Assembly (NCBI GenBank): GCA_033442325.1
Contig: JAWQFM010000013.1
Span: forward strand, 962,885 to 1,026,884
Source: Salpingoeca rosetta
Taxonomy: Eukaryota > Protista > Choanoflagellata
Reading direction: 5' to 3'
DNA: 64,000 nt
The position numbers and the translations under genes were made by a program. A model generated the notes under the pieces. The model saw nothing but the letters and a program-made list of their open reading frames with translations, searched no databases and was not told the origin of the DNA. Positions 47,843-55,224 of this stretch are shown in pieces. Each line of letters opens with the position of its first letter. Position 1 is the first letter of the stretch.

Positions 47843-47899
47843 CACATACACGCACACGGACGTACGTATCACACATCGCACATCGCACACGGACGCGTG

Positions 47900-50173
47900 A
47901 TGGGGGCAGCGTTGACGGTTGCGACTGCTGAGCCAGGTCGCCGCCATGCACGGTTGAGACGACACAACAAACCATCAGCGTCAGGAGCAGGAGCAGGAGC
48001 AGGAGCCAGCTCAAGAATGAGCAAGCCGTCAAGCCGCCGCCAAAAAGCATCCCCAGGCACGCGCGTCGTGCATTACCCTCGCACACAATACCTGGACACC
48101 GAGCACCAGCGCGCAGGGCACCTGAGCGTGCCGTCAACAGACACGAAGAGCCTGAGCCTGATCAAACTGGCGGACAAGGGCGGAAAGTTTGCCCTCAAGC
48201 AAGGCAAGCAGAAGAAAGGGAAGCAACAGCAGTTCCCCCGGCACCGCCGCGTCCGCCGCAGTCGTCGCAAGCACGACAGCTGCTCCTGCAGCTTTGGTGC
48301 GCCCGCGTGCGAAAAGCACTTTGCCGTTCGCGAGTGGAGCGAGGTGGAGCTCGTGCTCAACCACTCCTCCAGCGGCGCAGGCAGCGCACGCCGCTGCCGC
48401 ATCAACACGCTCAAGACCGACACCACCACCTCCGTCCACTTCTTGGAGCCCGTGTCATCGCCACGCGCCCTGAGCGATGAGAGCGCCGACCCAGTGTATG
48501 TGACGGACGAGCACGGCAACCGCGTCGTTGTCTCCTGGTACCTGCAACTTGAGCGCGATGACCAAGATACGAAGGACAGCGACAGCAGCAGCAGCAGCAG
48601 CAGCAGTGGCGGTGGTGGCGATGGTGTTGGTGGCAGCGACTTGGCCGCCAAGAAGCAGCAGCAGCAGCAGCAGAAGGGACAGCACGAGCCAGGCTGCGAA
48701 GGAGACGCCCACGGCAGCAAACAGACTGGTGATGGCGATGATGTGGTTGAGTCATTCTACAGCGTGCTTGCCACACACAGCGTCACCACGCCAGCTGGCA
48801 TCGCGCCACCCCAGCCGCTTGCCACGATCCAGGAACAGGAAGAAGGAGAAGAGGAGGAACCAGAAGCAGAAACCAAGGGGACGGTGGATGCGCAACATGT
48901 CGAGCAGGCAATCAGCGTCACCGTGTGCGAATCTGAGATTGTTCAGACGCACCGACAGCAGCAGCAGCAGCAACAACAACAACAACAGCAACAACAACAA
49001 CAACAACAGCAACAACAACAAGAGGACAACACGGAGGGGGCAGCAGCAGCGCAGGGGAGCGAGCAGACCACCAATGACAGCAAGAGCGACCCCAAGACCA
49101 ATGCTCACGCACACGACGACGCAGCACAGGAAGTGGAGGAGCAGGAAGCGAGTGAAGCGGACACGGACGACACTTGCTTGTTCCACCACCACCGCCATGC
49201 CTCGCTGGGCGACACCATGGTGTCTTGCCCACTGTCACCGATGGATGTGGTGCTGCGCCAACGCCAGGCCCGCGCAACCGCGCTCGCCGCCGCTGCAACC
49301 GCAACTACAGTGAGCATGGCTTCATCTTCAGACGCCAAGACTGCACCCGCGACCAGCACGACCAGCACGACCAGCACGAGCTTTGCCTCCCTGCCTCAGC
49401 ACAGTGAGCATGAACTAGGAGCAGGAGAAGACCCAGATAACGCTGTGCCAGCGCTCTCCGCCAGCACAGACTCCCTACCCCCACCACCACCGCCGCCACC
49501 GCCGCCACCACCCGCCCCGGAACACGACGCGGCCGAATTGGGTCCGAGCAGCGTCCTGAGCAAGGCTGCGGCGATGGAGGGCCAAACACTGTTTGCTCCG
49601 CGCTCGCCACCACTGCCGCCGCCACCGCCACCGCACATGTTGTGCGGGTCACCATCCCTACCACCATCCCCACCATCCCCACCATCACCACAGTCGCCAC
49701 CGCCACCGACGACGAGGCCGATTGTGGCGTTTCCGCCCCCACCGTCAACCCCGCCCCCACCGCTGCGCGCACAGAGGGATGAGACGCCGCAGCGGCGGTG
49801 CATCTCGTGCCCGCACCATCGCCAGAGGTGGTCGTTCAAGCGCGAGGAGACGACCGAGTTGTGGGTGTACCCGCTGATGGGCGATGCGCAGGTGGGTGAC
49901 CTGCTCCACACCATGCTGACGCCCAAGGCGTACTATGTGCTGTGCCGGTGCTGGTGCAGCATTGGGCACTGCTGGCGCGTGTCATTCCTTGACGATGCCG
50001 GGAGCGTTGTGCACCACAGCCTGGCGCACGCGCCAAACGGGCGGGTGTATGTTGACGGTGTGCTGATGGCGCACCGCCGCTTCAGTGACCTTGCCTCTGC
50101 CCTGTTTGCATGGCTGGAGCTGAACCAGCCCCAGCTGCGCTTTTGTGTTCGCCCATGTATCGTTGTTGTGTGA
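47900..50173 (+). CDS. Intronless ~757-aa protein: possible N-myristoylation site, basic region, polyQ/acidic/poly-Pro linker, C-terminal SH2-like domain
   Basis: Uninterrupted GC-rich ORF free of CA/TG tracts. Starts MGAALT, contains several PPPPP runs, and its last ~100 aa follow an SH2-like pattern (W..LL..YYVLCR..VSF..VVHH..F.DL). Confidence 0.75.
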   Translation: MGAALTVATAEPGRRHARLRRHNKPSASGAGAGAGASSRMSKPSSRRQKASPGTRVVHYPRTQYLDTEHQRAGHLSVPSTDTKSLSLIKLADKGGKFALKQGKQKKGKQQQFPRHRRVRRSRRKHDSCSCSFGAPACEKHFAVREWSEVELVLNHSSSGAGSARRCRINTLKTDTTTSVHFLEPVSSPRALSDESADPVYVTDEHGNRVVVSWYLQLERDDQDTKDSDSSSSSSSSGGGGDGVGGSDLAAKKQQQQQQKGQHEPGCEGDAHGSKQTGDGDDVVESFYSVLATHSVTTPAGIAPPQPLATIQEQEEGEEEEPEAETKGTVDAQHVEQAISVTVCESEIVQTHRQQQQQQQQQQQQQQQQQQQQQQEDNTEGAAAAQGSEQTTNDSKSDPKTNAHAHDDAAQEVEEQEASEADTDDTCLFHHHRHASLGDTMVSCPLSPMDVVLRQRQARATALAAAATATTVSMASSSDAKTAPATSTTSTTSTSFASLPQHSEHELGAGEDPDNAVPALSASTDSLPPPPPPPPPPPPAPEHDAAELGPSSVLSKAAAMEGQTLFAPRSPPLPPPPPPHMLCGSPSLPPSPPSPPSPQSPPPPTTRPIVAFPPPPSTPPPPLRAQRDETPQRRCISCPHHRQRWSFKREETTELWVYPLMGDAQVGDLLHTMLTPKAYYVLCRCWCSIGHCWRVSFLDDAGSVVHHSLAHAPNGRVYVDGVLMAHRRFSDLASALFAWLELNQPQLRFCVRPCIVVV

Positions 50174-50261: not shown

Positions 50262-51665
50262 GGCATGACTGCCCCAGCTTCCAATGTGCCTGTTTTGTTT
50301 GTGAAGTTTGTTTGCCTGGTTGTCACAACCTCACAACATCACCTCACAGTATTGCTTATTGCTGAACTCTGTTCATATGATGTCCATATGATGTCCAACC
50401 AATCCTGTACACACAACCAAGTGCAAAGCCCTGAGAGGCCCAGGTTCAGACAAAAAGCATTGTGAGCGCGTGTGAATGGTGTGGAAAGAAGGGGAAAATG
50501 TGGAGGGAGGGTGGTTCACAGCACGGAACGACGAACACCGCCTCCTGCCAAAGCACGTGCGCGACAGCATAAGTTGTAGGAAATTGTGCCCCACCGGGAA
50601 TCTTGAAAGGCGTGGAAGCGCGTGCATGTTTTCGTTCTTTCGTTGTCAAGACGAGTTTTGTTTGTTGGACGTCTGCTGTGTGTTGGTTGGTGTGCGCGCA
50701 TCCCACCAAGATGTGTGTCACATCATCACATCACATCATCACCGATCGGCGGGTGTGGTGACGACAAGAACCTGACAAACAGATGTGGGTGGTGTGAAGG
50801 TTGCCCGCCACGCATGCACGCGTCTCAACGCCAATCAATGGAAGAATGGAGCAGTGTAAACGTGTTCTCAGGCAGGAGATCATGTGTTGAAAATGAACGC
50901 CTGAGCTGGCTTCAGACAAGGCTCTCTATTCTCTCCATTTTGGGCATCAATTCACTGTGGCGCTGAAGCGCGTTGTGTGCATCTGCACCTGCATCACACA
51001 TGATGAAAGAGACAAAGAAGCAACAGCCACACAGAGGCAAGGAAGGAGATACACGAGCGTGACAACAAGGACAACACTAGCACCCAGCATAACCAGCAAG
51101 ACACACACACACACACACGCCACTCAAGGAGCAAGCGTTTAGCATGAGGCGCACAAAACACCAAAACACGTACACACACACACATAAACGCGTACACACA
51201 CACATTAACGCGTACACACAAAACACACACACGCGCGCACACACACACGCACACACAGACAGACACACTTCAGCGCTGGGTGATGAAGTAATGAGTGAGA
51301 CATACAAATGCTGTTGGGGATGGGATACTTAGTCAAGGGGAAATGAAATAAAAACAAGCATCCTACCAGCCAACAAAACAAGCAAGGGGGCCAGTAAGGA
51401 GCAAGGACACAGTGCGAGAAGGAGGTGTGAGGGACATGTCACAATCAGCGCCAATGCGAGCGGCGTTCTGGCTTGATGACGGCAAAGGGAAAGTAGCACG
51501 CTCAAACACTGAGGATGGGGGTCAGCATAACTTGTGGCTTAGGAGCACAGCGAACATGGCCGTGATATGTACAGGCGTTGCTCTGAGACGCAGTGGGCGC
51601 TCGCAGGCGTGAAGGCGTGTGCGCGCGCTTTTCGAAAAATGAAGTTGCAATGCAATGCAGGGTGG

Positions 51666-54298
51666 CTATCCTTCGTGCTCGTCGTCGTCCGGCATATCAG
51701 GTGATAACTGGCGGTTAAAGTCTGCAATCTTTCGACGAAGCACTGTGGTGAGGTGCGTGCGCGTGTGGGAAAAAGATGTGGCTGGGGTGAGCAAGCACGA
51801 CGGAACAAGCAACGCAAAGCAATGGTGACAGAATGCAGATGAAACAGCCACGCGCACTCACAATCAGCACACACACACACACATACACGCGCATGTGACA
51901 GGGGCGAGTTTTGTCACGCCCACCGCACCCAAATTGCACAACCAACGAAACTAACGAAACACAAAACAAAGCAGCACGAACATCAGGCACCCAATCATCA
52001 CAACGGCACCATTCAACACAACATAACACAACACACACACACACACACCACGCACGCACACACACACAACACACACACACACACACACACACACATTGTT
52101 GCATTTTCTTCGGGAATTGGCGACACACGGCGATGGTGCGACAACGCGTGCAGCGGTGATCTAATGTAAGCATGAGGGGTGCGCAGGTGTGACAACAGGG
52201 GGTTTAGCTTCACGTTACAAGAAGGGAAATCCAGAACGCTCAACCACGTTGCGGAGCAACACAGAAAGCAGTCAGCATTCGTACGTTGTGACTGGTCAAA
52301 CTTGAACGACTCCTTGCCACAGGTGTACTGTCGTTCACATCCTCGCGGCATAGTCTTCAAATCTTGGAAATGCGGTCACCAACAGACATCGAAAACGCCA
52401 CCATGGTGAGTCGAGCGGTGCAGGCTGCACAATCACACTCGGCTTTTCTTCGCCTTCTCCTTGTGCGAACGCATGGCATTGATGATGCTGCTGTTTTGTT
52501 GTTGTCGCTGCTGTCTCTCTTGATGATGATGTTGTTGTGGTGGTGGTGGTGGTGAGCACACGATACCTTCAACAAAGGCTTCTAAGGTGTAAGAGGGGTC
52601 AATTGCTCTCTGCTGCCTATCGATCCACTTCAAGATGTCGTTGTACACGCCACTGTAGCACACGTTGCAAATACTGCGCAGTGCGAAGTAACGTCGTCGT
52701 GAGGTGCAGAAAGAGAAACAGAGAGAGAGAGAGTGTGTGTGTGTGTGTGAATAAGTGAACGAGCGAGCAAGCGAGTGTGTGTGTGAATAAGTGAACGAGC
52801 GAGCAAGCGAGTGAGTGAGTGAGTGAGTGAGTGAGTGAGTGAGTGAGTGAGTGGGTGAGTGAGTGAGTGAGTGAGTGAGTGAGTGAGTGAGTGAGTGAGT
52901 GAGTGAGTGAGTGAGTGAGTGAGTGAGGGAGTGAGTGAGTGAGTGGGTGGGTGAGTGAGTGGGTAAGCACAGGCGCTCAAACGTACGACAACGTCGAAGC
53001 ACAATCAACCACGGCCACCACCACCACCACACCTTTTGATGGGTTTGTGGCTGGAGCGATCACAGATGGGGCAGAACTGGTGCTGGCTGCCCGAGGCGTG
53101 CGCTGCTCTGCCCGTGGGCCCGCCCGTGGGCGTATCTGGCCCTGAAGACGGCATGAGCCCGGTGTCCATCGATGGCGAGGGCACGGACGGGGAGTGCTGC
53201 GATGAGGCGGAGTCGTGATATGGCTGTGCTCGCGCAATGGCCGGGGGTGGTAGGCCCGGGCCTGGGCCAAGGTGTGCAGCCCCGCTGGCCGAGGGAAACA
53301 CCGGTGGTGCTCGCGCTGGCCGCTGTGGCGGCGCCTCTGCGGTCTCAAAGAACATGCTTGCCACGCCACGGGCCGTGTCGTGAGCGGCCGGAAGACGGAA
53401 CTGCAGACGTTGCTGCTCGTTGGGTGCGTCCGCTCCGAGACGCTGGAAAGCAAACCCCATCGCTGTGCGCGCCCGCGCACCCGCCCGAAGCGAGCCCCGC
53501 ACATGATGTGCAGGCTGCTGCTGTTGTTGTTCTTGTTGGTACCACTGCTGCTGCTGCTGCTGCGTGTGTGGGGCGTGTGCACTATCGACGCTGGCAGCAC
53601 TCGTGGTGTCGTGCTGGCCACAGGCCCGCGCCATGACGCCCGCCATCACAGCCATCAGCATGTGCTCCTCTATCCGTGCCGTGCCAGGGGCGCGCATTTC
53701 ATTGCCGTTGTTGGCGCTGCCGCTGCCCGTTTGCTCGTCAGCTGCAAGCAGCATGGACTTGGGCGGCAGGCTCCCGTGGCAGGAGATGGGCATTGACTCG
53801 TTAAAGCTCCGCTTCATCCTGTGCCCGCCTCCTTCGTGCGTCCTCATTTCTCCCATCGATGTGGCTGCTGTTGCTGCTGTTGCTGCTGCTGCTGTGGGCG
53901 GCTGTATTGCGGCAGGGAGCTCAATCAGCGGCGTTGCTGCGGACGACAGCTGCGGTTCAGACGCGGGCGCTTCGAATGCATCGTCTGGCTCGAGACGTCG
54001 CCCCACAGGCCACGCCACGTCCAGGGGGGATGGGTCTGCCAGGGAAAGCGGCACCAGAGGTAGCGGCGTCAGGCTGCTGGGCTGTCGCTGCGCGTGTGCC
54101 TGTGGTTGATGTAGCAAGCGAGCAGAGGATGTCGGGTAAAGAGTCGCCAACGCGAGGCCCGTGGAGGCGGGGTTGGGCAAGTGTGAAAGCGAGCAGTGTG
54201 ATGGCGACGTTTGTGCCAGCGCGTCGTGGAAGGCGCGACTCATGTCGAGTTCTGACGCAGCCCAGTCACGAAGGGCTCCCCCGGTGTGCTTCTGCTCC

Positions 54299-54383
<85 letters not shown>

Positions 54384-54913
54384 GTTGTCGTTTAAAGGCG
54401 TCGAGAATGGCGGCGGGAAGGAAGGCAGGCAGGTCGGGGTTCTGCCGTTGCGTGCGCTGTGCCGGTTGCGTGTGTGTCCGAGTGTTGGACCATGCCAGTG
54501 TCATGGACGGCGAAGTGTCCACGTGCTGTTGGTGCTCTGCTTCTGTGCTGGACTGCGAGGGCGCTTGTTGCTGGCGTTGGTGGTGACGGGGCTGGTGTTC
54601 GCGACACCGTGGCACGGCTGCCGGCGGCTGGGGTTGCGATTGGCTGTTGAGGAAGTAATTGAGAACCGTACGGCAAGCAGTTGGGACGAGTGACTGTTCA
54701 CAGCTGGCGGGTACCTGATCATGAATCCACTGCCCAAGCACCTGCTTGGCAAAGGCAAGCTGAGAGACTGCTTCTGCTTGGGTGAGTCGCACGTCACCTT
54801 CGCCACCTTCTTCAAGCAGCTGCTGTTGCTGGTGGTGCTGAGCATGTAAGCCTTGGCTGTCGTCATAATCCTGGCCTGTACTCGAGGTTGGTGTTCGCCT
54901 TCGTAGTGGGTAC

Positions 54914-54992
<79 letters not shown>

Positions 54993-55224
54993 GCTGTTGT
55001 TGTTGTTGTTGTTGTTGTTGCTGCTGCTGCTGCTGTTGTTGCAGTTGCTGTACGGCTGCAAGCAGCGGTGTTGACGATAACAGTGCGGTGCCTGCCTCAT
55101 CGTTGCTGGCGATGGTGTTGTTGTTGTGGTTGTTGTTGTTGTTGCTTGCAGGGGCGTAGCATGTGCTGCCAACCGGGTCGGCGCGCGCTGCCGTTGCCGG
55201 GCCCTGCCCGCCATCTTCCGCCAT
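51666..55224 (-). CDS. PolyQ-rich putative transcription factor with C-terminal 9-Cys double zinc finger; exons 55224-53033, 52673-52567, 52362-52285, 52160-52095, 51742-51666
   Basis: A ~730-aa first exon has two long polyQ tracts and a basic HRMKRS motif. Four downstream exons join in matching phase through GT-AG sites to give CPIC..CNVC..CERQYTC..CTRCRTIAVC and end LRRKIADFNRQLSPDMPDDDEHEG-stop. The exon-3 acceptor is a weaker AAG. Confidence 0.72.

Follow-up and report, generated by a model that had tools for sequence, protein, structure and literature searches.

Nuclear receptors are a hallmark gene family of animals, and the origin of their two domains, the DNA-binding domain (DBD; zf-C4 in Pfam, a C4-type double treble clef zinc finger) and the ligand-binding domain, is an open question. 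In the receptor DBD, eight cysteines are arranged in two consecutive C4 modules with helices beginning at Cys 3/4 and at Cys 7/8, and receptors such as EcR, TR and VDR have an extension helix C-terminal to them. The sole published pre-animal trace that we found is a brief report by Lopez-Escardo et al. (2019) on Pfam zf-C4 hits without a ligand-binding domain in choanoflagellates, from which the authors concluded that zf-C4 predates animals (PMC6792448). A preliminary description of the locus presented here had still listed nuclear receptors as animal-specific, which for the DBD is outdated in view of that report. The locus resides on the minus strand of a 64,000-nucleotide stretch of the choanoflagellate Salpingoeca rosetta (contig JAWQFM010000013.1, positions 962,885 to 1,026,884), henceforth the window. 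It contains an expressed five-exon gene whose product carries a Cys-rich domain belonging to a choanoflagellate family, and the explanation that we favor on balance is that this domain holds two zinc ions, packs in a manner resembling the receptor DBD and docks on DNA. What is new is an expanded family of about 18 S. rosetta genes that sequence models have missed.

Five minus-strand exons (55224-53033, 52673-52567, 52362-52285, 52160-52095 and 51742-51667) join in frame up to a stop codon at 51666-51664, yielding a product of 839 residues, and all four introns are of the GT..AG type. Exon 1 (53033-55224, 2192 nucleotides, residues 1-730) is an open frame for a Gln-rich, low-complexity N-terminus that includes polyQ runs of 43, 8+21 and 6 residues; at its end, the Cys codons of C-P-I-C (from 53073) provide Cys 1/2. 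Intron 1 (52674-53032, phase 2) cuts the first finger between Cys 2 and Cys 3. Exon 2 (52567-52673) contributes Cys 3/4 (C-N-V-C), helix 1 and the start of an inserted helical linker, helix 1 being the stretch Y-S-G-V-Y-N-D-I-L-K after C-N-V-C as assigned by alignment to the AlphaFold2 model of a paralog. Intron 2 (52363-52566, phase 1) is followed by exon 3 (52285-52362), which provides an M-P-R-G-C motif and the C-x5-C knuckle (Cys 5/6), and intron 3 (52161-52284, phase 1) by the 66-nucleotide exon 4 (52095-52160) with R-C-T-R-C-R (Cys 7/8), helix 3 and a non-conserved ninth Cys. Beyond intron 4 (51743-52094, phase 1), the coding part of exon 5 including its TAG stop (51664-51742) specifies an acidic tail preceded by a basic C-terminal helix (L-L-R-R-K-I-A-D-F-N-R-Q-L). 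The cysteine pattern of the spliced product, C-x2-C-x11-C-x2-C-x38-C-x5-C-x14-C-x2-C-R-x4-C, is exactly the one given in the preliminary description, and the double-C4 domain is, as also claimed there, absent from every single open frame at the locus.

The gene is spliced and expressed. All four junctions proposed beforehand occur in one spliced transcript contig of 1580 nucleotides (X4), in which 52095-52160, 52285-52362 and 52567-52675 stand back to back; exons 2, 3 and 4 occupy record positions 855-963, 964-1041 and 1042-1107, and 52567 is joined to 52362 across intron 2. The loose ends of this contig continue, beyond 52095, into exon 5 for its initial 30 bases (from 51742) and, beyond 52675, into exon 1 for its final 30 bases (to 53035). 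Because an AG is shared by both sides of the first junction, its GT-AG placement is 53033/52673. The contig covers the last ~854 nucleotides of exon 1 and extends ~400 nucleotides into the 3' untranslated region. Two of the junctions were also found in raw reads of RNA-seq run X18, namely the joint 52160/52285 (three reads) and the transition from exon 4 to exon 5 as a loose end at 52095 (four reads). Read depth in X18 is alike across exons 2, 3 and 4, and skipping of exon 4 was reported neither in the X4 contig nor in the X18 reads. The preliminary description had considered that transcripts might skip exons 3 and 4 or read through exon 2; the RNA includes both exons. Retention of intron 2 would put a stop in frame at 52433, after the first finger, and since only one X18 read lies within this intron (52371-52480), read-through to that stop is minor at most. 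This read may stem from unspliced precursor or from rare intron retention. Reads and window differ at two positions (52322 and 52585), and both differences are synonymous. Alignment furthermore places exon 4 on the C-T-R-C-R segment in every homolog, the same segment being contiguous in intronless paralogs, which shows independently that this exon is part of the protein.

The five-exon gene is the real form of PTSG_05628 (P0001), which is mis-annotated. The public protein matches the last 285 residues of exon 1 at 100% identity, comprises 348 residues and has an internal Met (ATG at 53817) as its annotated start. Its model splices exon 3 directly to exon 5, so that the R-C-T-R-C-R exon with the last Cys pair is missing. 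We infer the roughly 716 N-terminal residues of our model, which are Gln-rich and of low complexity, from an open frame of 760 codons (chance about 7e-11) and from the long Gln-rich N-termini of the paralogs PTSG_02264 (900 residues) and PTSG_00329 (714 residues), both of which support the extension. The 490 residues upstream of the annotated start are predicted from the open frame, the paralog N-termini and a weak motif match. This match concerns a weak helical motif at ~54652-54774 (residues 151-191), L-x-x-A/V-K-x-V-L and then L-V-x-x-A-C-x-x-V, that recurs in P0003 (343-382) and P0006 (17-50) with BLASTP expectation (E) values of 0.45 and 2.4, neither of them significant; the motif may be another element conserved in the family. 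A homolog search with residues 400-730 of exon 1 found nothing, the annotated protein being shorter than the length window of that search. The basic C-terminal domain behind the ~716-residue N-terminus spans ~100-120 residues, and the protein ends ~25 residues past it. Other public models of family members are incomplete as well: P0018 is missing the first Cys pair, and P0007, annotated with 169 residues inside a frame that stays open for over 520 codons, is truncated at the N-terminus. As a consequence of such incomplete models, the family is under-represented in protein databases, and models that are truncated or lack a Cys-encoding exon may explain why it went unnoticed.

As judged from the alignments, the domain defines an unnamed, choanoflagellate-restricted family that is conserved under constraint. 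A phmmer search against 1.84 billion representatives, with a query missing the first Cys and exon 4, returned 12 relatives at E <= 0.001 (1.5e-9 to 7.5e-4), and the species named among them are without exception choanoflagellates, namely S. rosetta, S. infusionum, S. kvevrii, Hartaetosiga balthica, H. gracilis and Choanoeca perplexa. A profile search with the family alignment added only two members, P0017 and P0018. P0012, an extra phmmer match, was discarded as an unrelated repeat protein. Searching the genome in six frames with the P0001 tail turned up paralogs, among them L003 (= P0007), which encodes the whole domain in one exon, and a profile scan of the S. rosetta genome gave ~18 family loci. 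A metagenome scan detected one locus, on the environmental contig L041, with the same exon layout as the gene in the window. In the exon-wise hits, breaks recur near profile positions 20 (at least five loci), 59 (at least seven) and 83-84 (at least eight); these positions are the intron sites of our gene, for which alone exact phases were checked. The break between Cys 2 and Cys 3 is also present in L005 and in L041. Our literature search retrieved no paper naming the family, PTSG_05628 or three of its paralogs. Thus, the suggestion that the locus might represent an undescribed family stands, given conserved choanoflagellate members and no Pfam model.

All eight cysteines are invariant in 10-13 sequences, the spliced product included, which means that homologs do keep the second Cys cluster on which the preliminary description had staked its reading. 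Also invariant are the Tyr after Cys 4, a Gly, an Asp and a Lys in the helix that follows, the Arg that precedes Cys 5, the C-T-R-C-R motif of Cys 7/8 and a Pro ~8 residues further on, and P-R-G-C at Cys 5 is conserved in the family and in our gene. Spacings within the family range over x10-12, x37-50, x4-5 and x6-16. Compared with 12 members, the spliced product is 25-36% identical over 112-130 residues and possesses every invariant residue. All domains of the family are basic, with net charges of +4 to +15 and isoelectric points of 8.6-10. Among paralogs, the helix face expected to pack in the core is fixed, and variation is seen in the pair of residues that separates Cys 3 from Cys 4 and corresponds in position to the receptor P-box. 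Some members are arranged in a way that suggests recent local duplication: on contig 13, ~440 kb from the gene described here, two lie tail to tail ~1.5 kb apart at 1454036-1454386 (plus strand) and 1455776-1456090 (minus strand), and on contig 30 near-identical exon hits at 460368-460490 and 485108-485230 are separated by 25 kb.

How does this domain compare with the receptor DBD? Both have eight cysteines distributed over two successive C4 modules, and both show a C-x(4-5)-C knuckle in the second finger and C-x2-C-R at helix 3. The C-x5-C knuckle and the RCxxCR motif, on which the likeness had originally been based, thus hold across the family in the slightly wider forms C-x(4-5)-C and (K/R)CT(R/Q)CR. 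The ninth Cys, listed at the time as a further match, does not hold, as it is present in only a few members. The differences pointed out before, i.e., no FFRR, a longer linker and no ligand-binding domain, are borne out. The loop of finger 1 has 10-12 residues in the family (11 in our gene) compared with 13 in receptors, the linker 37-50 (38 in our gene) with two extra helices compared with 15-17, and the loop of finger 2 has 6-16 (14 in our gene) compared with nine. Helix 1 reads C-x-x-C-Y-[SNG]-G-[VIL]-[YFW]-[NHK]-D-x-x-K in the family and C-K-G-F-F-R-R in receptors. The family also differs in having no conserved ninth Cys and no Pfam or profile match, and the DBD-like domain of our protein is C-terminal, behind a Gln-rich region, with no ligand-binding domain: a search for PF00104 was negative, Pfam being empty for both the 730-residue product of exon 1 and P0001. 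Since the Pfam cut-off (21.1 bits for zf-C4, PF00105), the spacing and the helix-1 motif all fail, the family has not been filed as zf-C4. Here it departs from the choanoflagellate proteins reported in 2019, which the Pfam model detects while it misses this family.

LIM, GATA, MYND and DZR_2 domains resemble the family in being small, Cys-rich and zinc-dependent. The first unit, C-x2-C-x11-C-x2-C, is similar to generic zinc ribbons, and searches of the PDB with the paralog and the family profile matched only an L37e-type zinc ribbon (E 0.18). DZR_2 (PF18912) was rejected; it scores 11-16 bits against a cut-off of 27 and covers profile positions 3-31, i.e., the first C4 only, the match being limited to the first 24 residues of the domain. 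MYND (PF01753), which has C4-C2HC ligands, was likewise dismissed. There is no Pfam match to it and no conserved His in the family, so that the domain, unlike MYND, lacks His ligands, and the similarity to MYND found with a language model (0.87-0.88; 151-156 shared features) is in the chance range and below the tool's trust level.

The fold was predicted with AlphaFold2 for the paralog segment P0007:48-169 from an alignment of 10 sequences, and the structural statements that follow refer to this paralog model. Its mean predicted local distance difference test score (pLDDT) is 92.2, with a predicted template modelling (TM) score of 0.84, and the five models range from 87.7 to 92.2. One helix (residues 25-41) begins at Cys 3/4 and another (87-97) at Cys 7/8, in agreement with the helix postulated earlier after the fourth Cys and with the helix positions of the receptor DBD. 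Between the fingers there are two short helices (43-48 and 53-62), and the domain ends with a long helix (99-121). When the PDB was searched with Foldseek, receptor DBDs made up most of the best-ranked matches (TM by target 0.6-0.68, probability up to 0.96). VIA-align, which is independent of Foldseek, compared the model with 48,161 representative chains, and receptor DBDs took all of the top eight places, with Z 6.0-6.7 and 16-20% identity over 68-92 aligned residues. A second look with the same program produced 39 nuclear receptor entries at Z 5.2-7.4, the best of them (Z 7.4) with a root-mean-square deviation of 3.2 Å and 83 of 87 residues aligned; superpositions at Z 6-7.4 cover 68-86 residues with deviations of 2.2-4.4 Å. 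EcR aligns over 83 of 87 residues, as far as model residue 119, and as the alignments of EcR, TR and VDR reach residues 119-122, the last helix, which is basic, matches the C-terminal extension helix of these receptors. In the ESM Atlas shape search, a zf-C4 cluster was in the first row. LIM, GATA, MYND, RING and double zinc ribbon (DZR_2) domains were not among the top 50 structural matches of either VIA-align search. The anticipated likeness to receptor DBDs, and not to another zinc-finger family, is therefore what the predicted fold returns. The structural scores are middling by the programs' own standards, and the case made by the model lies in how exclusive and how complete the match is and not in its size. 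A partial control is available in a zf-C4-like S. rosetta peptide (L010) that, modelled without an alignment, gave no confident receptor fold (pLDDT 44).

On this basis, two zinc sites formed by knuckle-plus-helix modules in the receptor arrangement are predicted with good confidence, and the eight invariant cysteines most likely bind two zinc ions. The cysteines were assigned to the zinc ions from the secondary structure of the model, whereby each module would consist of one Cys pair in a loop followed by another at the N-terminal end of a helix, as in treble-clef fingers. The two modules would pack as in the receptor DBD, their two main helices lying across each other, with the long C-terminal helix in the place of the extension helix of EcR, TR and VDR and an extra two-helix insert where receptors have a linker of 15-17 residues. 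The domain may dock on DNA with the helix after Cys 3/4 in the groove, and conserved Arg/Lys residues of the loops, the C-T-R-C-R motif and the basic C-terminal helix could contact the backbone. Gln-rich N-termini are typical of transcriptional regulators, and the Gln-rich part of the protein would serve as an activation or condensate-forming region. We infer DNA binding and a role as transcription factors for the family because the domains are basic, the N-termini Gln-rich and the residues between Cys 3 and Cys 4 variable. As there is no ligand-binding domain, the protein would be a constitutive or otherwise regulated factor and not a hormone receptor.

Several observations weigh against this interpretation. 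At E values up to 10, no Pfam match was obtained for the exon pieces of our gene, P0001, the intronless paralog or the 10 members of the alignment; a scan of the whole genome with the zf-C4 hidden Markov model picked up no family locus, and the family profile, compared with the PDB at E up to 10, found no nuclear receptor chain. The modelled paralog is 36% identical to the protein encoded in the window. Foldseek E values are only 0.6-5, and MCM N-terminal and FF domains, which are helical but unrelated, appear in VIA-align at Z 5-5.9 with 6-9% identity. Helix 1, Y-S-G-V-Y-N-D-I-x-K, has an invariant Asp and few basic residues, and such a nearly invariant helix would fit a role in the core or in binding a shared partner as well as it fits DNA reading. 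Our protein has a His in place of a near-invariant Arg of the family in the first loop, and expression of the gene is low (17 reads across three RNA runs).

Whether the resemblance to receptors reflects common descent is a separate matter. The preliminary description had offered a pre-animal relative of the receptor DBD and an undescribed treble-clef family as alternatives, and both survive; kinship with receptors gained support from the predicted fold of the paralog and none at the level of sequence, where no method linked the domain to zf-C4. The domain may be a true, very divergent homolog, the family and zf-C4 going back to one double-C4 domain of the choanozoan ancestor, of which animals fused one copy to a ligand-binding domain, a possibility that we take seriously but do not consider the probable one. 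The structural alignment spans the whole receptor DBD together with the extension helix at 16-22% identity including the Cys ligands, all eight cysteines have the same order and role, both domains have C-x2-C-R at helix 3, and the family is located in the sister group of animals, from which zf-C4 hits without ligand-binding domain have been reported (PMC6792448) and in which a separate S. rosetta locus, L010, has a sub-threshold zf-C4 match. Against this stand the lack of a signal at the sequence level (Pfam, zf-C4 scan of the genome, family profile versus PDB), an hhalign probability of 0.1 between the family profile and the zf-C4-like peptide of S. rosetta, the divergent spacings (x11 versus x13, x37-50 versus x15-17, x6-16 versus x9) and the different helix-1 motif. 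In animal receptor genes, a single intron typically lies between the fingers, compared with four intron positions here, which would also count against homology. More specifically, and a shade more tentatively still, the family could be the surviving choanoflagellate sister lineage of the receptor DBD. If true, a double-C4 domain with the receptor fold, extension helix included, was already the C-terminal module of Gln-rich regulators before animals arose, and the first nuclear receptor originated by joining one such domain to a ligand-binding domain.

It is rather unlikely, in our view, that the domain is instead a convergent two-zinc module that shares only its general arrangement with receptors and binds protein or RNA in place of specific DNA sequences. 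Such a module would be in keeping with Z scores below 8, with Foldseek E values short of significance, with a nearly invariant helix 1 containing an invariant Asp, with a first C4 unit resembling generic zinc ribbons (L37e, E 0.18; DZR_2, 11-16 bits versus 27) and with protein-language-model features that point weakly toward MYND (0.87-0.88). However, receptor DBDs and no other zinc-finger class came out on top of three independent structure searches, and the domains are uniformly basic and follow Gln-rich N-termini of the kind typical of transcriptional regulators. Least probable is that the fold itself is wrong, AlphaFold2 having forced a remembered receptor fold onto a Cys-rich sequence from a shallow alignment. 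The alignment indeed comprises 10 sequences only, and single-sequence models of P0001 and P0007 in the ESM Atlas are poor (pLDDT 0.41-0.47). Then again, all five AlphaFold2 models reached 87.7-92.2, the two inserted helices are absent from receptors, so that the model is no copy of them, and the program produced no confident receptor-like fold for L010 without an alignment (pLDDT 44). Owing to its predicted receptor-like fold, the two-zinc, DNA-docking domain that we favor bears on the origin of the animal domain and opens the question to experiment in a choanoflagellate amenable to genetics. Were the likeness convergent, the family would still be among the larger candidate transcription-factor families of choanoflagellates, and one without a name.

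The S. rosetta genome contains another zf-C4-like sequence of interest for comparison. L010:1411-1740:- (contig 23, 207782-208111, minus strand) is a single-copy open frame of 886 codons, and its peptide reads C-x2-C-x21-C-x2-C-I-K-F-F, followed by C-x12-C-x2-C-L-Y-Q-R-C-L-D-V-G-I. With 16.7 bits it remains below the zf-C4 cut-off and is the only plausible zf-C4-like S. rosetta locus found; its best PDB matches by sequence include the DBDs of SF-1, VDR, RXR and GR (E 0.09-3). It is unlike the family described here, as evident from the hhalign comparison, and no paralogs of it were detected. L010 may be a stand-alone zf-C4 of the kind reported in 2019 (PMC6792448). A second match, L009 on contig 31, scores 24.1 bits and was rejected as spurious, since it has no Cys ligands and lies in a junk-looking frame.

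The window as a whole is eukaryotic in character, with 55% GC and abundant microsatellites and polyQ codons. Within the gene, introns 4 and 1 both open with GT/GTG-rich repeats and close with CA/C-rich stretches. Intron 4 has a (GT)n tract at its start and is C/A-rich at its end; these ends pair in the minimum free energy fold, but a stable pairing was rejected, given z = -1.1 relative to shuffled sequences. Intron 1 is open in the frame of exon 2 and contains a (CTCA)n microsatellite of ~47 units. In the neighborhood of the gene, an open frame of 758 codons on the plus strand (47897-50173) is rich in poly-Pro, poly-Gln and Ser tracts.

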